Shown here one piece after another: positions 6,477 through 45,616 of a DNA stretch of 54,701 nt. The first letter of the stretch is position 1, and each line of letters begins with the position of its first letter. The stretch spans positions 1 to 54,701 of the forward strand of contig JBJFYY010000101.1 in assembly GCA_044892505.1 (NCBI GenBank), written 5' to 3'. The position numbers and the translations under genes were made by a program. This DNA comes from Schmidtea nova. Taxonomy: Eukaryota. Below the pieces are notes generated by a model. That model worked only from the letters and a program-made list of their open reading frames with translations, was not told where the DNA came from and did not search any database.

Positions 6477-9247
6477 TCCCCCACTAAAACCAATATAACA
6501 CAAGTTCAAACTACCATATAATTTTCATGTGCCAGCAAAAAAAAAAAAAAATAACTACTGGAAGGCCTAACAGCCTCTCAGTAGTGAGAAAACACTTTCA
6601 AACAATTAAGGGCCTTTTTGTGAACAAGGTTATAGAGAGTTTGTAAAACCCATCAAAAACCAAATTTATGCTACACAAAATGCCTTTAAACCAATGTCAG
6701 TTTCAATCACAGGCCATTTTGTGGATAAATTTGTCACTAACTCTAAAACAAACACAATTTACAAACCATTTACCACCAAGCTATCAAAATTCAACTAATC
6801 AAAAACTATGTTATAAAATAATTGTTTAAAATCAGATTTAAAAACAAATTTAAAACACAAAAAACATTTTCAAAAAATTAATAAAAATTACCGTACTTTA
6901 GTTCACCATTTTACGGTCAAAATAGCGTTTGCAATACCACTATATTGCAAGTCATTTTTGTAGAGAAATTTGCCACTAAATTTAAGTTTTAAAAAACTAA
7001 AATAAATGACAAAATTCTCAACATAAAATAACTAACATAATAAACATAATTTTAAACTATACAATAAACATAGTTTTAAAAACAAACACACATTTAAAAA
7101 GCCATTTAGGACCCAGCTAACAAAATTCAACTAATCAAAAACTATGTTATAAAATAATTGTTTAAAATCAGATTTAAAAACAAATTTAAAACACAAAAAA
7201 CATTTTCAAAAAATTAATAAAAATTACCGTACTTTAGTTCACCATTTTACGGTCAAAATAGCGTTTGCAATACCACTATATTGCAAGTCATTTTTGTAGA
7301 GAAATTTGCCACTAAATTTAAGTTTTAAAAAACTAAAATAAATGACAAAATTCTCAACATAAAATAACTAACATAATAAACATAATTTTAAACTATACAA
7401 TAAACATAGTTTTAAAAACAAACACACATTTAAAAAGCCATTTAGGACCCAGCTAACAAAATTCAACTAATCAAAAACTATGTTATAAAATAATTGTTTA
7501 AAATCAGATTTAAAAACAAATTTAAAACACAAAAAACATTTTCAAAAAATTAATAAAAATTACCGTACTTTAGTTCACCATTTTACGGTCAAAATAGCGT
7601 TTGCAATACCACTATATTGCAAGTCATTTTTGTAGAGAAATTTGCCACTAAATTTAAGTTTTAAAAAACTAAAATAAATGACAAAATTCTCAACATAAAA
7701 TAACTAACATAATAAACATAATTTTAAACAAACAAAAAGACTAAAACAATTACGTTAGGGACATACTAGTCAAAAACAATTTAACTTGTAGTTAAAACTA
7801 TAGCGATACCAAAACAAAGCTACCCATAAACAGGACAAATTATAAAAGAGCAACAAGAAACAACACCATCCTTATAAAAACTAAGTAACAAAAATAAACA
7901 AAACTACATTATAAAATAATTGTGTTAAAAATATGATTTAAAAACAAATTTAAAACACAAAAAACATTTTCAAAAAATTAATAAAAATTACCGTACTTTA
8001 GTTCACCATTTTACGGTCAAAATAGCGTTTGCAATACCACTATATTGCAAGTCATTTTTGTAGAGAAATTTGCCACTAAATTTAAGTTTTAAAAAACTAA
8101 AATAAATGACAAAATTCTCAACATAAAATAACTAACATAATAAACATAATTTTAAACAAACAAAAAGACTAAAACAATTACGTTAGGGACATACTAGTCA
8201 AAAACAATTTAACTTGTAGTTAAAACTATAGCGATACCAAAACAAAGCTACCCATAAACAGGACAAATTATAAAAGAGCAACAAGAAACAACACCATCCT
8301 TATAAAAACTAAGTAACAAAAATAAACAAAACTACATTATAAAATAATTGTGTTAAAAATATGATTTAAAAACAAATTTAAAACACAAAAAACATTTTCA
8401 AAAAATTAATAAAAATTACCGTACTTTAGTTCACCATTTTACGGTCAAAATAGCGTTTGCAATACCACTATATTGCAAGTCATTTTTGTAGAGAAATTTG
8501 CCACTAAATTTAAGTTTTAAAAAACTAAAATAAATGACAAAATTCTCAACATAAAATAACTAACACACCCCCAACCCCAAACACAAGTTCAAAATACCAC
8601 ATAATTTTATGTGTGCCAGCAAAAAAAAAAAAAATAACTACTGGAAGGCCTAACAGCCTCTCAGTAGTGAGAAAACACTTTCAAACAATTAAGGGCCTTT
8701 TTATGAACAAGGTTATAGAGAGTTTGTAAAACCCATCAAAAACCAAATTTATGCTACACAAAATGCCTTTAAACCAATGTCAGTTTCAATCACAGGCCAT
8801 TTTGTGGATAAATTTGTCACTAACTCTAAAACAAACACAATTTACAAACCATTTAACACCAAGCTATCAAAATTCAACTAATCAAAAACTATGTTATAAA
8901 ATAATTGTTTAAAATCAGATTTAAAAACAAATTTAAAACACAAAAAACATTTTCAAAAAATTAATAAAAATTACCGTACTTTAGTTCACCATTTTACGGT
9001 CAAAATAGCGTTTGCAATACCACTATATTGCAAGTCATTTTTGTAGAGAAATTTGCCACTAAATTTAAGTTTTAAAAAACTAAAATAAATGACAAAATTC
9101 TCAACATAAAATAACTAACATAATAATTTTTAAACAAACAAAAAGACTAAAACAATTACGTTAGGGACATACTAGTCAAAAACAATTCAACTTGTAGTTA
9201 AAACTATAGCGATACCAAAACAAAGCTACCCATAAACAGGACAAATT
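6477..9247. repeat. Modular tandem array: ~260-bp core with alternative spacers (336-bp and 428-bp periods) plus a duplicated ~320-bp block
   Basis: AAAATTCAACTAATC at 6786/7122/7458; CAAAAAGACT at 7733/8161; block 6477-6800 recurs at ~8567-8890. Confidence 0.92.
9189..9247 (-). other. tRNA-like element X homolog (also 7783-7841 and 8211-8269)
   Basis: Aligns to 251-312; AATTTGT/ACAAGTT acceptor-like stem retained. Confidence 0.45.
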
Positions 9248-9261
9248 CGGCTAAACCTCGA

Positions 9262-9750
9262 CTAAACCTTAGTACTAAAGCGGGGACCGTTAAAGTAATT
9301 ACGTACCTTAATCAAAATATTAACTAGTCTGTTCAACTGGTGGCAAGGAATATACAAAATGTAATAAAACAAACCAAACCCAGATAAAAAAGTCAAAAAA
9401 CGAAGCTCAAGCTTCAAAATAAATATATAAATATCCAAACTAATTACTAAAAGACGACGACAACGATATTCCTCCTTTTCCATAGAGCTAACGTTAAAAA
9501 ACTTAAAGTAAATAATACCGAATCAATAGAAGTACAAACAAAAAAAACGAAAAAAAGAGTTATAATACAAAGGAGCTAAAGAATGTAAAAAGCTCAAAAA
9601 CTTACGAATTACTCAGACAAGACCACTACCAACACCTAAACCATAATAAAAAATACCAGAATGCTTATAATAAACTCAAACAAAAATATAAAGTATAACA
9701 AAAACCAGGAGCAAAGTACTATACGAAAACAAATTTGATGTATGAACCAT
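9262..9750 (-). CDS. 162-aa ORF starting MVHTSNLFSY; putative extended ATP synthase subunit 8-like protein
   Basis: ATG 2 nt after the nad2 stop, open under code 9 to TAG; N-terminal hydrophobic helix; same T/G-rich composition as the genes. The atp8 identity is inferred from position and topology only. Confidence 0.7.
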
Positions 9751-9752
9751 TT

Positions 9753-10700
9753 CTAGGTTATAATGTAGTAAATATAGTACAAACTAAATAGAGAAGAAAG
9801 GATTAAAGAAGAAAAACTAAACAAATAACTATAATTAGAATGAAAAAACAAATCAGATAAAACTAAGACCATTATATACATGGATAAAACTATGATACTA
9901 ACCAACAACAATAAAACAAAAGAACTATTTATAGTCAAGGGTGTTGCCAACAAAAACAACACAAACTTACAAGCAAACAGAATAAAAGGAGGGAAACCTG
10001 TTAAAGTAACATATAAAACTAATACTAAGTAAACAGACATATTTTTTAACTGGCTAAAATCATATAATGTCTGAACGTTATTATTGTAAATCAAATAAAC
10101 AAATAATCTAAAAATCAATACTAAATAAACCAACCAATACTTCAAAGCACAATCAGAAGAAATTGTACAAATAAAAACAAACCAACTCGTGTGGAAAGTG
10201 GAAGATCAAAACAAATAGTATGCTAAATCTCGATAAACTGATAACATGTAAAACAAAGAAATCAAGGAAACCACAAGACAACAAAAACCAAACTCAGAGT
10301 AAGGTAGCTTTGCTAAACCTATGTAAACAAAACAATAAACAGACTTATGTATAACCAACATAAAAAACAAAACTAAATAGTTAAAATAAGAAACAACTGG
10401 AAAAAACCACCAAAACAAAGGAAAAAAAGACAACTTAAACAAAACTGCTAAAGACAAAAAAAAAGTCTCCCTATAAATAGAAGACCATATAATAAAGATA
10501 TCGCTAATTAAGGTAAACAAGAAATAAACAAAAACACCCAAATTTATGCTATAGTTATTAAAATAATTTAAAAGCATCATTGCTCTTAAAGATTTTAAAA
10601 GAACATAAAAATAGAATTTAGCATAACTTAACCTAAAAATCAGCATAAAAGAAGAGTAAAAATATATTCCTCAATAACTAAAAAGCAATACGTGTAGCAA
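9753..10700 (-). CDS. nad2: NADH dehydrogenase subunit 2 (TTG start)
   Basis: Single frame under code 9; LFKLSFFPLFWW and LTGFPPFILF motifs. Confidence 0.9.
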
Positions 10701-13749: not shown

Positions 13750-13813
13750 CAAATTGGGAGAAAAACTCTAAAACAGATTAAGAGTCTGCCACTTAAACAA
13801 AAGATTCCAATTA
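13750..13813 (-). tRNA. trnK: tRNA-Lys(CUU)
   Basis: GCAGA-CT-CTT-AA-TCTGT; a CUU anticodon is expected when AAA=Asn. Confidence 0.9.
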
Positions 13814-13869
13814 TAGGGCTAGTCCTTCCTTGTAAACCAAAATAACAAATGCATAAACACTCAAAAAAA
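13807..13869 (-). tRNA. trnQ: tRNA-Gln(UUG)
   Basis: TGTTA-TT-TTG-GT-TTACA; acceptor stem poorly paired. Confidence 0.6.
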
Positions 13870-13932: not shown

Positions 13933-14742
13933 TTACTGTATGTAGTAACCAAACCAATATACAAAAAAATAAAGAAACAGCCAAACCACATCAACAAAAT
14001 GCCAATATCAAATAGAACACTCTAAACCAATATGCTGCTTATTAGAAAACAAGCTAAAACGAACACGATACAACCTAACTGATATGAAGACTAAGCCCAA
14101 AATAACGTGGAAACCATGAAAACCAGTCAACATAAAAAACACACTACCATAGACAGTACTTTTTATACTAATGTAACTCATAATATATTCCCTCACCTGG
14201 AAAAACAAAAAAAACACACCATAAAACAACGTAATAAAATAACTTCAGTCTAAAGGAGTGTTAGAAGGAACTCTCACATAAACCAAACCACTAGAAATAA
14301 CACAGTAATGACAAAAAGTAATGCTAACACCAGAAGACAACAACAAAACCGTATTCAACAAAGGAAGACCAAATGGGTCTATAACTAATCTGTTAAACAT
14401 GAAGGGGGGCCAAGTATCAATGCTAACTCCTGGATTTAAGCAGTTATGGAAATAACTTCAAAAAAAACCAAAGAAAAACATAACCTCAGAGCAAACAAAC
14501 AACAGAAAGCCAACTCGCAACCCTAAAGAAACTAAATTAGTAGTATTACCTGTCGAGGATTCTAAAGTAATGTCACAAAACCAACAATAAACACAAAAAA
14601 GCAAGTAAACAATAGAAATAACAAACACATACTTAAAACCAAAGTTCAAGTAGTAAAGAAAAGATACTACCAAAAAAAACAAAGAATAAGAAGTAACACC
14701 AGGCCACGGGCTAATGCGAACCATGTGACAGCTAAAAAACAA
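13933..14742 (-). CDS. cox3: Cytochrome c oxidase subunit 3 (TTG start)
   Basis: SPWP, SEVMFFFGFF, TGFHGFHV and WYWHFVDVVW motifs. Confidence 0.97.
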
Positions 14743-14743
14743 A

Positions 14744-14803
14744 CATCAGAAAGATATAAAACTTTAGTTTTGGGTCGTAACCAAACCCTTTCAGGTCTCT
14801 GAT
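14744..14803 (-). tRNA. trnR: tRNA-Arg(ACG)
   Basis: ATCAGA/TCTGAT acceptor; TTTGG-TT-ACG-AC-CCAAA. Confidence 0.9.
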
Positions 14804-14865
14804 ATAGGAATGAATCCCTTCACCTAATAACCGACAATTATTTATTCTAAATAAACTAATTCCTA
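14804..14865 (-). tRNA. trnD: tRNA-Asp(GUC)
   Basis: TAGGAAT/ATTCCTA acceptor; AATAA-TT-GTC-GG-TTATT. Confidence 0.92.
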
Positions 14866-14921: not shown

Positions 14922-16517
14922 CTATAATAAACAAATAAAAAGCAAGATAACAAAAGAAATAAAAGAATATAAACCCATGTTCAACAAAACTCTGCTATAA
15001 AAAAATTTCAAATAACGAATATAGCATAAATTACCTAAACTCACAATAAAACTAAGAAAAAATATACCCAAATCCAAAAGATAGTAAAAAGAACCAACCT
15101 TCAAACTAAAATAAGAAAAAAGCAAATAAAATATTTTCAAATAATTATAAGAATAAGCCTTACTAGCCCCAGTGTGCTGCAAAAAAAAAAAAAAAAAAAT
15201 ATACATGGCTAAAAGCCATGCAGAACTTACACCGATTAAATCCCTGGTATCCAAGCTAAACAAATAAGTACCTAAGACCATGACTAACGCGTATAAAATA
15301 TAAAAAGGAAGATAAGACCATCTAGATTTTCTAGAAGTAACTAAATACTTATTCAAATCCCCTAACAAAATTCTAATAAAACGATAAGAATAAATAAAAG
15401 TTAATAACAAAGAAAAAGAAAACAGAACCCTATATACTAAGCTATATCTACAAGTAAACACCCTAGACAACACCAACTCCTTTGTATAAAACGAAGACAT
15501 AAAAGGAACACCAAACAAAGAAAATGCATCAACCATCATAAAAAATGAAACCAATGGGATAGAGTAACCCAAAGAATTCAATAAACGAAAGTCTTGATTG
15601 TGTCTGCCAGAAACACTTACAGTACCAAGCACAACAAACATAGAAGCCTTGAAAAGAGCATGAACAAGCATGTAAAAAAAAAACAACTTTATAAAGCCAT
15701 ATCTCAACAAACAACCCATAAACCCCAATTGACTAAGAGTAGAGTAAGCAACTAACTTCTTTGAGTCAAAAGTCAACAATGCACTACAACTGCCTAGAAA
15801 CAAAGTAACTAAACTTAAAAATCTAAACATAAAGATGAAATCTAAAGAAAGGCTGTCAAATAAACGAAAAAGCATATATAAACCAGCAACAACTAAAGTA
15901 GAAGAGTGTACTAAAGCTGAAACAGGGGTAGGGGCAGACATAGCCTCTGGTAACCAATAGCTAAAAGGATATACGGCACTCTTAGTAAAAAAAGCGATAA
16001 CTAAGAAAACAATAACCAAACAATCCAAAGACAATGCGGAAAAAGAAAACCTAAAAAAGTATCACACCAAACTAACTAAATAAAGAGAATCACCCAAACG
16101 TTTAACTAAAAAAGTCTTAAGGCTAGCTGAAAAACTAGAACCACAACCATATCAACTTACTAAGAAAAAGCTAACAAACCCTAAACCATCCCAACCAACA
16201 AGAAAAGAAACAAACCTAGGTGAAATAATTAGTAAGACCATGGAAAACACAAAAAGATTGAAAACAAAAACAAAACGATACAAATTGACTTCATCAACAA
16301 AATAATAAACCATAAAAGAGTTAACACTTCTCACTATTAGTAGTAAGACTGCAATAAACATAAAACTATACCAATCAAAAAACATAAAAAAAGAAAAATA
16401 ATCAAAAGAATTAATCAAATAAAGATCATAAACTAAAACTGTAGAACCACCCTCAAGAGAAAGTATTAAAAAAACAATAAACAAGAACATAAAAAAGCGA
16501 GTGTAAAAAAACAACAT
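14922..16517 (-). CDS. nad5: NADH dehydrogenase subunit 5
   Basis: GWDGLG, KSAVYPFSYWLPEAMSAPTPVSALVHSSTLV and KKLVAYSTLSQLG motifs. Confidence 0.97.
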
Positions 16518-18867: not shown

Positions 18868-18875
<8 letters not shown>

Positions 18876-19140
18876 GCTTAGGTGGGATATGTTCAACAGG
18901 AATGCCTGGTGCAGTATAAGAAGGCCAAGCTATGCACCAATACATAAGACATATCCAAGCATACATAAACAAAGCAAACATAACTAAAGCACCAAAACTA
19001 CCAAATAACCTTGAAAAAAAACGCTTCTTATAATAATCAGAATTACCAGGATTCACAACCTTGGCAGAACTACTGCTAGTAACAGAGAGTTTTAAAACAA
19101 CAGACTTAGAAACTAATAAACCATTGCTAACAACATTCAT
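18868..19140 (-). CDS. Orphan 90-aa ORF with one predicted transmembrane helix
   Basis: ATG to TAA on the coding strand, filling the nad4-cox1 gap; identical in copy 2; no recognisable homology. Confidence 0.55.
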
Positions 19141-20556: not shown

Positions 20557-20818
20557 TAATACGCGACTCGCTATGTAAAAATTTGACTAAAACAGAAAAA
20601 CTAACTGCAGATTCAGAAACAAACAAAGCTAAAATAAACAACAACACTATAAAACCATAAAAATACAATGAAAGACCTAAAGAAACATAAACAAGAAGCA
20701 TACAGATCTCTAAAAATAAAAAAAACTTCAAAATACGAAAACTCAAACAATACAAAAAAAAGATATTCAAAAACAAAAAGAAGCCTACCAACGAATCAAC
20801 GAAACTAACTCTAATCAA
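20525..20818 (-). CDS. nad4L: NADH dehydrogenase subunit 4L (start uncertain: TTG 20818 or 20791)
   Basis: LFLEICML and FVSESAVS motifs; overlaps nad4 by 32 bp. Confidence 0.88.
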   Translation of the reverse strand: MIRVSFVDSLVGFFLFLNIFFLYCLSFRILKFFLFLEICMLLVYVSLGLSLYFYGFIVLLFILALFVSESAVSFSVLVKFLHSESRINVCSKTFIAY

Positions 20819-21876
20819 GGAAAATCAAAAAACAAAATGAAATACAAAAAATAAAAAAAAGAACTAACCACACTGACTGCCACATAAGGAGAGTCAACAG
20901 ACAACCCACCTAAAACTGTTAACAGTAAAAATTTTAAAAAAAAAAAAAAAAAAAAAATTAAATTAAAATAATCCATAACTACCATTTCCAAAGGGTAATT
21001 AAAAAATGGAATAACAAAATAAATAAATATAAAAAGAAACAGAAATATCACACCACCTAGCTTATTCGGAACAGAACGAAGAACAGCATAAGCAGCTAAA
21101 AAATATCACTCAGGCTTTATGTGGGCAGGGGTAGACAAAAATTTAGCTTCCTCAAAATTAGAACTATCAAACTGAAAAAAAGGAACAAACAAAACTAAAT
21201 ACAAAAACAAAACAAATAGAATAATAAAACCCAAAAAATCATTTATAACAAAATAAGGACTAAACATTAACGAACGTCCCTTAGAACTAATCCCTAAAGG
21301 GTTACCTCTCCCATCTACATGTAAAAAAAACAAGTGAAAAAAAATAAATAAAACTAAAACAAAAGGCAACAAGTAATGTAGAACAAAAAAACGAGATAGA
21401 GTAGGAGAAGATATTGAAAAACCACCTCACAACCAACTAACCAAAACAGAACCAAAATAAGGGACAGCAGATAGTAAGCTAGTGATAACCGTGGCACCTC
21501 ATAAAGACATTTTTCCTCAAGGAAGTACATAACCCAAAAAAGCAATGGCCATGCACAGCACAAAGATAAAACAACCAACCAATCAAGTACTGGCTCTTAA
21601 AAAACTGTATTTATATAAACCACGAAATAAGTGTAAATAAATAAAAAAAAAAAAAAAAGAAGCACCTATTCTATGTACACTACGAAATAAAAAACCAAAA
21701 AAAACCTCACGATAAAACAAGTCCAATGATTCAAAAGAACCTGAAACAGAAGGAAGATAAACAGAAGACAAAAAAAAACCAGAAACAAACTGAACAGCAA
21801 ACCAAACTAACAACAAAGAGCCAAAACATCAAAAATAATCTATTTTCTTAGGAGTGGGTAAGTATACTGTGGACAT
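20785..21876 (-). CDS. cob: Cytochrome b
   Basis: LPTP, YFWCFGSLL, LPWGKMSLWGATVIT and HIKPEWYFL motifs; single frame ATG to TAG under code 9. Confidence 0.97.
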
Positions 21877-21937
21877 CACTATCCGACGTTGGTTCAAAAA
21901 TACTATAGAAGGCACACGACTACAGAAAAACAAGGCA

Positions 21938-21996
21938 ATGAAACTGGATAAACCATTGATAAGTTAAAAACTTATTGTTATTTAAACTAAATTTAA
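21938..21996 (-). tRNA. Supernumerary trnN-derived tRNA-like gene with UUU anticodon
   Basis: ATAAG-TT-TTT-AA-CTTAT arm, GG-TTTAT-CC T-arm and ..AAATT/AGTTTCA acceptor copied from trnN. Confidence 0.55.
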
Positions 21997-21999
21997 CAA

Positions 22000-22146
22000 G
22001 ATTCAAAAGAATCTTAGACATAAGGAAGATAAACAGAAGACAAAAAAACCAGAAAAAAACTGAATAGCAAACCAAACTAACAACAAAGAGCCAAAGCATC
22101 AAAAATAATATATTTTCTTAGGAATGGGTATGTATACTGTGGACAT
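22000..22146 (-). pseudogene. Duplicated, frameshifted 5' fragment of cob
   Basis: ATG TCC ACA GTA TAC ATA CCC ATT...; 6 substitutions in the first 98 nt (5 non-synonymous), then a 2-nt deletion. Confidence 0.9.
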
Positions 22147-22205
22147 CTCTATCCACGTTGGTTCAAAAACACAGTAGAAGATACACGACTACAGAAAATA
22201 CGGCA

Positions 22206-22267
22206 ATGAAACTGGATAAACCACCAATAAGTTAACAGCTTATTATTCTTATTTAAACTAAATTTCA
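22206..22267 (-). tRNA. trnN: tRNA-Asn(GUU)
   Basis: TGAAATT/AGTTTCA acceptor; ATAAG-CT-GTT-AA-CTTAT. Confidence 0.92.
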
Positions 22268-22268
22268 C

Positions 22269-22328
22269 AGTAAGCTCTAAAAGATTGTGAAGGTTGCAAC
22301 TTCGTGTATTAAATTATACTAAACTTAC
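22269..22328 (-). tRNA. trnC: tRNA-Cys(GCA)
   Basis: GTAAGTT/AGCTTAC acceptor; GAAG-TT-GCA-AC-CTTC. Confidence 0.92.
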
Positions 22329-22329
22329 A

Positions 22330-22390
22330 AAGAAGTGGTAAATAAAACATAATCAGGCTTACAAGACCTTATACTCAAAATGACAAATCT
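22330..22390 (-). tRNA. trnT: tRNA-Thr(UGU)
   Basis: AGGT-CT-TGT-AA-GCCT; weak acceptor stem. Confidence 0.65.
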
Positions 22391-22391
22391 A

Positions 22392-22453
22392 CACTAAAGG
22401 GTAAAACCTTCAAAGGAGCTTAAATCCAACACATAAACATCTGCCACTATAGC
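22392..22453 (-). tRNA. trnL2: tRNA-Leu(UAA)
   Basis: TGGCAGA D-arm; GGA-TT-TAA-GC-TCC. Confidence 0.85.
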
Positions 22454-23358
22454 AATACAAATTAGCTTCCTTTCGTACAACAAACCTATATTCAAGATAA
22501 AAACCAACCTGATTTACATCGGTCTAAACTCAAATCACGAATAATATTACTAGTCGAACAGACTAAAAACAAAAGCAGCTTCACCAATATTTAATTACAA
22601 TTCAACATCGAGGTAGAAAACAAAATCTTCAATATGTCCTCCAAAATTCTATCTCCCTGTTATCCCTAAGGAAGTTCTGTTTAACAAATAAATTTTTAAA
22701 ACAAATACAGATACCCCAACAAATAACTTCACAAATTGCACTAAGTTTTAAACTCACTAGGGTCTTTTCGTCATTAACAATAAAAACCGAATCTTTACAG
22801 AAAAAATAAATTATAAAAACAAATCTATTAATAACTTATCGCCTATCATTAACCCATTCAAACAATTCTGAAATTATCAGACAAACAATTATGCTACCTT
22901 CGTACAGTTAAAATACTGCAGCTATTTAAATACAACATTGAGCAGAAAAATACATTTTAATAAAAAAGAAATGTTTTTAAAAAACAGTTGTAAACGCACA
23001 GAGTTATATAAAAAATAATAGAAAATAATTGTGTAATTACTAGACTGAAAGTCGCCTATTGATCAACAACCAGCTTAGACTTATTTTAAACAATCAAAAG
23101 TAATAATATTAAAAATAAAACAATAAAAAAGAACAATAAACCCAATAAACTAAAAGCTTATCCCACTCTTAAAAAAAACTAGAAATAAAAATACGAAAAC
23201 ATCTCACTACTACAATTCTAATGTAAGTTAACTATTAATCAACAACAAATAAACAAAACACATAGAAAGTATATCAAATCTTATACGAGATTAAATAAAC
23301 CATAAAATACCTACAAACCGTGATACAAAAAGGTCAAACCTTCTCTAATATTTGTAAC
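22454..23358 (-). rRNA. rrnL: 16S-like large subunit rRNA
   Basis: Minus strand carries CGTGATTTGAGTTTAGACCGATGTAAATCAGG, ACCTCGATGTTG, TAGGGATAACAG and AAGACCCTAGTGAG LSU motifs. Confidence 0.95.
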
Positions 23359-23766
23359 ATGAAGAAATTAAGTTGTAATCTTAATAAAAATTAGTTAGTA
23401 GCAAATCGTCCATATACTTGTTCTTCACAATGACTTGTAGTTAGTAACTATCGCGATAATAAAATAAGGCTATCCATAAAAATAGGACAAGTCTGGATGA
23501 AGAAGTTAAGTTGTAATCTTAACTGAAATAGCTTATAGCGAATCATCCAGTACGTGTTCTTCATCAAATGTCATAAAAGATCTATTATTTGGAAAATAAT
23601 CATAATATATTATACTAACATAAGAATAAATTCTGAAGAGCAAAAACCCACCTATACATTTACAATGTAATCTTCTAGAAATTAAAATACTCAGAAAACC
23701 ATAAAAGAAACCCATAAGATTTATAATCAAGACCTAAACTTGAAGCATTACCTCTGCCACATTTAC
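23359..23766 (-). tRNA. Copy 2 cluster: trnS1, element X, trnS1-like, trnG, trnY, trnL1
   Basis: Same sequence as 178-587. Confidence 0.85.
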
Positions 23767-45100: not shown

Positions 45101-45159
45101 ATGAAACTGGATAAACCATTGATAAGTTAAAAACTTATTGTTATTTAAACTAAATTTAA
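45101..45159 (-). tRNA. trnN-derived UUU tRNA-like gene, copy 2
   Basis: Same loop sequence as 21938-21996. Confidence 0.55.
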
Positions 45160-45162
45160 CAA

Positions 45163-45309
45163 GATTCAAAAGAATCTTAGACATAAGGAAGATAAACAGA
45201 AGACAAAAAAACCAGAAAAAAACTGAATAGCAAACCAAACTAACAACAAAGAGCCAAAGCATCAAAAATAATATATTTTCTTAGGAATGGGTATGTATAC
45301 TGTGGACAT
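45163..45309 (-). pseudogene. cob 5' fragment, copy 2
   Basis: Copy 1 +23163. Confidence 0.9.
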
Positions 45310-45368
45310 CTCTATCCACGTTGGTTCAAAAACACAGTAGAAGATACACGACTACAGAAAATACGGCA

Positions 45369-45616
45369 ATGAAACTGGATAAACCACCAATAAGTTAACA
45401 GCTTATTATTCTTATTTAAACTAAATTTCACAGTAAGCTCTAAAAGATTGTGAAGGTTGCAACTTCGTGTATTAAATTATACTAAACTTACAAAGAAGTG
45501 GTAAATAAAACATAATCAGGCTTACAAGACCTTATACTCAAAATGACAAATCTACACTAAAGGGTAAAACCTTCAAAGGAGCTTAAATCCAACACATAAA
45601 CATCTGCCACTATAGC
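45369..45616 (-). tRNA. Copy 2 cluster: trnN, trnC, trnT, trnL2
   Basis: Copy 1 +23163. Confidence 0.85.

Follow-up and report, generated by a model that had tools for sequence, protein, structure and literature searches.

Why should a planarian mitogenome carry, beside an ordinary trnN, a second trnN-like element whose UUU anticodon is cognate to AAA, the codon reassigned to asparagine? The element, referred to here as N', is a 59-nt trnN paralogue (21938-21996, minus strand) with the anticodon loop TT-TTT-AA, and it lies just upstream of cob in the window that we analyzed, a 54,701-nt stretch of contig JBJFYY010000101.1 from Schmidtea nova. A sequence-only reading had proposed that N' could be a dedicated AAA-Asn decoder or an Asn-to-Lys remolded tRNA, with a cloverleaf kept only for processing of the cob 5' end as the simpler alternative. 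Neither decoding role gained support from our analysis, given that N' has diverged about as much as its flanks, is structurally degraded, and has no decoding gap to fill. The simpler alternative, whether as a processing signal for the cob 5' end or as an element that has simply not yet decayed, fits the evidence best. We put the probability at roughly three in four that N' is the leftover of a young tandem duplication, which serves at most as an RNA-cutting signal before cob and is no decoder of AAA. Within this remnant reading, about half of the weight falls on an element that is still useful as punctuation and about half on one that is purely neutral and not yet deleted.

Self-comparison of the 54.7-kb window resolved it into 2.36 head-to-tail copies of a triclad mitogenome unit of ~23.16 kb (about 23,162 bp; for example, 6289-29450), a concatemer produced by the assembler. 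Because of this, the whole feature is repeated identically at 45101-45430, with a second instance of N' at 45101-45159 and of trnN(GUU) at 45369-45430 (both minus strand). The two full unit copies differ only in the length of one G homopolymer (G5/G6, 18801 versus 41963), probably a long-read consensus error. Runs of N in the window are masked positions and were not touched in the analysis. Transfer RNAs were called with ARAGORN in its metazoan-mitochondrial mode under code 9 (-mt -gc9); the default bacterial mode gave zero calls in the window. Together with code-9 open reading frames, these calls yielded the gene order M-H-F-rrnS-L1-Y-G-S1-rrnL-L2-T-C-N-[pseudo-cob]-N'-cob-nad4L-nad4-cox1-E-nad6-nad5, followed by S2-D-R-cox3-I-(Q)-K-atp6-V-nad1-W-cox2-P-nad3-A-nad2, which is the order listed for the triclads Schmidtea and Girardia (PMC4856072 Tables S1-S3). 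All genes lie on the minus strand, which is ~50% T overall and 67% T at fourfold sites. The protein genes are all intact and the standard tRNA set is otherwise complete.

The gene order points to a Schmidtea-like dugesiid, as do the nad4L match and a stretch of non-coding DNA that separates nad4 from cox1. In a word-index protein search with nad4L, the sole match, and thus the closest protein, was S. mediterranea nad4L at 68% amino-acid identity. Compared with S. mediterranea, the present mitogenome differs in its 32-nt nad4L/nad4 overlap and in its trnR(ACG). The same word-index search returned no candidates for the cob fragment and, for the cox1 fragment, just distant metazoan and bacterial cox1 proteins at no more than 63% identity. 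Among scans for DNA of relatives, two of metagenomes gave nothing or distant cox1 only, and one of viral contigs gave a single irrelevant match.

The origin of N' is recorded in its surroundings. As the sequence-only reading had it, a tandem duplication of ~272 bp left two trnN copies, and pairwise alignment bears this out with a unit of about 271/272 bp that comprises trnN and the first ~217 nt of cob, in copies ~90% identical. The 5' edge of the unit is the trnC/trnN boundary, with trnC(GCA; 22269-22328, minus strand) directly upstream of trnN, and its 3' edge falls ~150 nt into cob. The upstream unit begins with the canonical trnN (22206-22267, minus strand; anticodon GUU, loop CT-GTT-AA), called by ARAGORN and recovered by the Rfam tRNA model. 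This gene is followed by a pseudo-cob (21997-22205, minus strand), which aligns with 21725-21937 and consists of ~53 nt before the ATG and ~156 nt after it, with frameshifting indels. N' opens the downstream unit and leads into the intact cob, which runs from its ATG for 363 codons (20788-21876, minus strand) and was recognized by code-9 translation and conserved cob motifs.

The two tRNA copies are 85-88% identical and differ by 7 substitutions in 59 aligned nt and one 3-nt indel, counted pairwise and unpolarized. Over the 61 nt that follow the tRNA part, the units differ by 8 substitutions in 59 positions and two 1-nt indels, and over the cob part after the ATG by 11 in 150 and two further indels; one of these indels removed 2 nt from a T run of the upstream copy and shifts its frame. 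No third, older copy of the unit that might have served as an internal outgroup turned up in a sensitive self-BLAST. Decay of the co-duplicated cob fragment had been claimed as well; the frameshifts are there, but the decay is mild rather than heavy, since the piece is still ~93% identical to cob. Judged by these divergences, the duplication is young. A head-to-tail repeat that covers a tRNA gene and part of its neighbor, with the fragment of that neighbor truncated and frameshifted, is what tandem duplication and then random loss leave behind. By analogy, N' would be a known kind of object, a duplicated tRNA beside a pseudogene fragment, the standard signature of this process.

The letters of N' themselves appear secure. 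Contigs from four public sequencing runs of two studies (X1, X2, X3, and X5) are identical across 21861-22048, the anticodon included. A 3.6-kb contig of run X1 (20976-23200) covers both trnN copies with 0 differences, and a contig of X5, an independent run labeled as a soil metagenome, has 0 differences over 21861-22011. No variation among samples was seen over the N' region in the contigs of these four runs. Since the same letters recur in the contigs of all four, the T5 loop is real DNA and not an assembly slip, and the T5/A5 run at the center of the sequence-only reading thus stands in short-read-derived data. An error of assembly or polishing in this run of letters, or a nuclear copy (NUMT), would still have to be weighed, given that the window is an assembler-made concatemer whose unit copies differ at one G homopolymer. 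The agreement of short-read-derived contigs across four runs and two studies, one contig spanning both trnN copies, k-mer depths that are very high, as expected of an organelle, and uniformly intact protein genes all speak against such an artefact, to which we assign next to no probability. Other contigs do depart from the main arrangement elsewhere in the unit. One contig of X1 lacks 172 nt inside rrnL (22833-23006), and contigs of X1 and X2 fuse 23132 to 20829 with 23 foreign letters in between; both kinds may represent NUMTs or rearranged minor mitochondrial molecules.

In structure, N' is a tRNA-shaped element that has lost ground against its sister copy. ARAGORN called it as a 59-nt tRNA(ttt) with its anticodon at 21968-21966, and the alignment places the UUU anticodon (21966-21968, minus strand) as a G34-to-T difference from trnN. 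The predicted structures agree with the anatomy described from the sequence, with a perfect 5-bp anticodon stem and a 2-bp T arm, both as in the GUU copy, a 3-bp D stem re-formed after the 3-nt deletion, and 6 of 7 acceptor pairs (T2.C71) versus 7 of 7 in the GUU copy (G2-C71). C71 is common to both copies, and it was therefore the change of G2 to T that broke the acceptor pair in N'. The 26:44 pair has been lost as well. Further changes lie in the acceptor stem, in the D arm, at position 32, and in the variable region, while the anticodon stem, the T arm, U33, A37, and the 7-nt loop are intact. N' thus retains from trnN its descent and a cloverleaf with acceptor, anticodon, and T arms, whereas its anticodon is UUU and not GUU. 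Against the Rfam tRNA model, trnN(GUU) scores 29.9 bits, above the gathering score of 29, and N' scores 19.1 bits (E of 0.22 when 441 nt were searched); the model flags two non-canonical pairs, located in its acceptor and D stems. Decay is not proven by the low score, because many genuine tRNAs of this mitogenome stay below 20 bits too and most have low scores. At its minimum energy (-4.4 kcal/mol, z of -0.49), N' folds into no cloverleaf and lacks an acceptor stem, and in this fold U32-A38 and U33-A37 pairs shrink the anticodon loop to 3 nt.

A tRNA under selection might be expected to stand out from a pseudogene beside it, and N' shows no sign of excess conservation over its pseudogene flanks, although weak constraint is possible given the small counts. 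The tRNA part has diverged by 11.9% plus the indel and the flanks by 9.1% (19/209; Fisher p = 0.62, from small and unpolarized counts); set against the cob part alone, at 7.3%, the tRNA part lies on the higher side if there is any difference, again without significance in these small counts (Fisher p = 0.29). In the cob fragment, this 7.3% separates two lineages of which one is a pseudogene. Only 2 of the 7 substitutions in N' fall in stems, a paucity that is not significant. Furthermore, we simulated 3,000 copies of trnN(GUU), each with 7 random substitutions weighted by strand composition and one 3-nt deletion placed at random. ARAGORN recovered a tRNA at the original position from 679 of these (23%), so the retained cloverleaf needs no selection to account for it. 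The anticodon change has the direction of mutation bias on this strand, which runs from G to T, and G34 to T in N' follows the strong T bias. Several spurious "Asn(ttt)" calls were also made by ARAGORN elsewhere on this 50%-T strand. These comparisons remove all positive arguments for a function of N' that can be drawn from sequence alone, which falls short of proof of non-functionality.

The genetic code of this mitogenome sets the terms on which any UUU tRNA would have to work. In cox1, 55 of 60 homologues have Asn opposite the AAA of DRHF-N-TSFF, and 47 of 47 have Lys opposite an AAG. In cob, AAA encodes the Asn of LPTPK-N-I (the LPxPxNI motif) and of EEA-N-FLSTP (the ANxLxTP motif), and AAG encodes the Lys of HIKPEWYF and PNKLGG, motifs that are universal in this protein. 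AAA is used ~34 times, or for 26% of Asn codons, and AAG ~52 times. The resident trnK (13750-13813, minus strand; ARAGORN) has the anticodon CUU and reads AAG only. With AAA as Asn and AAG as Lys at conserved sites and with trnK(CUU) in place, code 9 applies, and with trnN(GUU) and trnK(CUU) both present, there is no decoding gap. That AAA encodes Asn here beside a normal trnK(CUU), as the sequence-only reading had claimed, is thus confirmed by the cox1 and cob alignments and by ARAGORN.

In split AAR boxes, a tRNA with U34 reads both A and G, and the avoidance of misreading between AAA and AAG is the very purpose of the CUU anticodon in code-9 trnK. It follows that N' charged with Asn would put Asn at AAG Lys codons, and that N' charged with Lys would put Lys at AAA Asn codons; either charging would make an efficient UUU tRNA harmful. 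AsnRS and LysRS are class IIb synthetases, which read the anticodon, and G34 is an identity element for AsnRS, so the G34U change should weaken charging with Asn and favor Lys. In echinoderms, the only code-9 system known to have been examined by biochemistry, AAU, AAC, and AAA are all read by a tRNA-Asn with the modified anticodon G-psi-U (Tomita et al. 1999, as quoted in PMC6319601), in agreement with the sequence-only reading. Here, trnN(GUU) and trnK(CUU) already serve the box as has been described for echinoderms. The papers searched described neither a UUU-anticodon Asn tRNA in any code-9 organism nor biochemistry of AAA = Asn reading in flatworms.

Taken together, these data leave it improbable that N' is a live tRNA, be it a Watson-Crick decoder of AAA as Asn or an intermediate in a GUU-to-UUU-to-UCU remolding of the kind suggested by the relocated trnS1 of S. 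mediterranea. As a dedicated AAA decoder, Asn-charged N' would read AAA by Watson-Crick pairing and relieve trnN(GUU) of a G:A wobble. This proposal draws on the match between UUU and a codon that means Asn ~34 times here, on the intact anticodon arm, and on the awkwardness of the modified tRNA-Asn(G-psi-U) solution of echinoderms (Tomita et al. 1999, as quoted in PMC6319601). It has to contend with the lack of excess conservation, the degraded acceptor and D arms, the Asn that wobble logic predicts at ~52 AAG Lys codons, and the impaired Asn charging expected of G34U; moreover, the duplication is so young that the mere presence of N' says nothing about selection. We regard such a decoder as highly unlikely. 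Alternatively, G34U might have made N' a substrate of LysRS, a tRNA-Lys(UUU) that reads AAA and AAG, in an incipient reversal of the code or a state of ambiguity. A single base at position 34 separates Asn and Lys identities, and the class IIb LysRS reads U35 and U36. The reverse remolding, from K(UUU) to N(GUU), has been reported in the sponge Axinella corrugata (PMC4783518). A code-5-type tRNA-Lys(UUU) would likewise bear UUU, but here AAA still occupies invariant Asn sites in cox1 and cob, and an efficient Lys-tRNA(UUU) would damage ~34 Asn positions. The resident Lys tRNA is trnK(CUU), and because it is retained, remolding has stopped short of its last defining step, in which the ancestral gene disappears. 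The structural decay of N' counts here too, and a shift to Lys is very unlikely.

The interval between trnN and cob in related planarians raises a third way in which N' could be a working gene. In asexual S. mediterranea, trnN(gtt) is followed by 639 nt annotated as non-coding, then by a 67-nt tRNA-like gene annotated trnS1(tct), and 22 nt later by cytb (PMC4856072 Table S2); in a sexual strain of the same species, 716 nt lie between trnN and cytb (PMC4856072 Table S1). A trnN duplicate ahead of cob might accordingly have been recruited as trnS1(UCU) in Schmidtea-type mitogenomes, with UUU one step between GUU and UCU. The shared architecture favors this path, as does the absence of trnS1 from the ancestral slot between trnG and rrnL in S. 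mediterranea (PMC4856072 Table S2; PMC12870015). Against it, a well-formed trnS1 still occupies that slot here (23359-23427), and the duplication, at ~90% DNA identity, is far younger than the split from S. mediterranea (68% for nad4L), so independent events would be needed; we see little chance that N' is a way-station of this kind. The 639- to 716-nt interval of S. mediterranea may be an older relative of the duplication at 21877-22267.

Mitochondrial polycistrons are punctuated by tRNAs, among them tRNA-like structures kept only as cleavage signals, as the Ojala-Attardi model holds. N' is the last tRNA-shaped element before cob and lies immediately 5' of it in the predicted polycistron. The 61 nt between N' and the cob ATG (21877-21937, minus strand) contain no stop in the cob frame, and they include an in-frame TTG at 21933-21931, 4 nt past the end of N'; a start there would give a cob of 1146 nt. 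This stretch could be a 5' leader or the true N-terminus of cob, and the cob start may be the TTG. In Girardia sp., trnN abuts cytb, which starts with TTG and is 1131 nt long (PMC4856072 Table S3). The ends and summed depths of contigs from X2 and X3, deep Nextera-type libraries of unspecified kind with short contigs, were considered as evidence of transcript ends and rejected, because the contigs break at k-mers common to both repeat copies.

Under the remnant reading, N' would have arisen as a by-product when trnN and the first ~217 nt of cob were duplicated in tandem in a planarian mitogenome of dugesiid type, and it would now stand midway in the process of tandem duplication and random loss. 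The truncated copy of cob would already be a pseudogene and decoding would be left to trnN(GUU), while N' drifts, with G34 to T giving UUU along the T bias of the strand and other changes accumulating elsewhere in the element. N' is probably cut out of the transcript, because it stands directly before cob in the polycistron and is still tRNA-like. It may thus still be excised by RNase P and RNase Z, which would free the cob mRNA from its pseudo-cob leader. Such cleavage would be the only plausible reason for N' to persist, with its shape kept while its anticodon drifts. Transcription and cleavage of N', like the absence of aminoacylation, are what we infer for it.

Comparable elements are known from other mitogenomes. 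The flatworm Craspedella pedum has a duplicated trnT together with cox1 pseudogene fragments (bioRxiv 10.1101/2025.07.01.662465). As in that species, the tandem unit described here contains a tRNA gene and a truncated neighboring protein gene, and one redundant copy of each is diverging; unlike in C. pedum, the redundant tRNA has by chance acquired an anticodon that matches a reassigned codon, and it occupies the place at which the 5' end of cob has to be formed. A doubtful and unexplained second trnN is annotated in the dugesiids Dugesia japonica and D. ryukyuensis, according to the legend of Fig. 5 in Ross et al. 2016 (PMC4856072). Ours is likewise an extra trnN call in a dugesiid mitogenome, with an origin by duplication that can be demonstrated. 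Any UUU anticodon becomes "Asn" in code-9 annotation tools, and the extra trnN of Dugesia may therefore be of the same kind. By definition, remolding takes three steps, in which a gene is duplicated, its anticodon changes, and the ancestral gene is lost (Sahyoun et al. 2015, PMC4783518). N' resembles alloacceptor remolding in its local tRNA duplication and anticodon point mutation, with donor and copy less than 300 nt apart on the same strand, but the third step is absent, and trnK(CUU) and trnN(GUU) are both kept. With the tRNA-Asn(G-psi-U) system of echinoderms, this mitogenome shares AAA as Asn and a trnK(CUU) confined to AAG, whereas the echinoderm solution is a single modified GUU tRNA. 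With tRNA punctuation in the Ojala-Attardi sense it shares the position of N' as the last cloverleaf before cob, at which cleavage would occur.

If the ordinary reading of N' as a duplication remnant holds, the locus shows, in a clean and datable snapshot, a planarian mitogenome in the course of tandem duplication and random loss. There is a warning for annotation as well, as tools running under code 9 will label N' "trnN." In addition, N' lends itself to a simple natural test, namely, whether a cloverleaf whose anticodon has become a "forbidden" one by drift can be kept for its role in processing alone. For the way in which flatworms read AAA as Asn, N' would be informative only if it proved to be charged, and were it truly an AAA-Asn decoder, it would have no precedent as a UUU-anticodon Asn tRNA of a code-9 mitochondrion.

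Some further observations concern the rest of the mitogenome. The trnS1 in the ancestral trnG-rrnL slot (23359-23427, minus strand) has a perfect 7-bp acceptor stem and a 6-bp T stem, and its anticodon loop, CT-ACT-AA, gives ACU and not the usual GCU or UCU. The anticodon of trnR (14742-14805) is ACG, and A34, possibly converted to inosine, may thus be used twice in this mitogenome. Two ARAGORN calls, "Gln(ctg)" at 10266-10328 and "Asn(ttt)" at 15189-15245 (minus strand), lie inside nad2 and nad5 and were discarded as false positives; the real trnQ(ttg) candidate sits at ~13814-13869, in the 56-nt gap between trnI and trnK. A tandem repeat array of 334- to 428-bp units follows nad2, and a tRNA-like shape without an anticodon, "mtRNA-???(tt)," was called by ARAGORN once per tandem-repeat unit at 6950-9100 (minus strand), with repeats at +23162. 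Of two unassigned open reading frames, one of 173 codons after nad2 (9265-9783, minus strand) is the counterpart of a 501-nt "?" ORF in S. mediterranea, and the other, of 90 codons (18868-19140, minus strand), lies between nad4 and cox1, in the place of a 427-nt non-coding region of that species.
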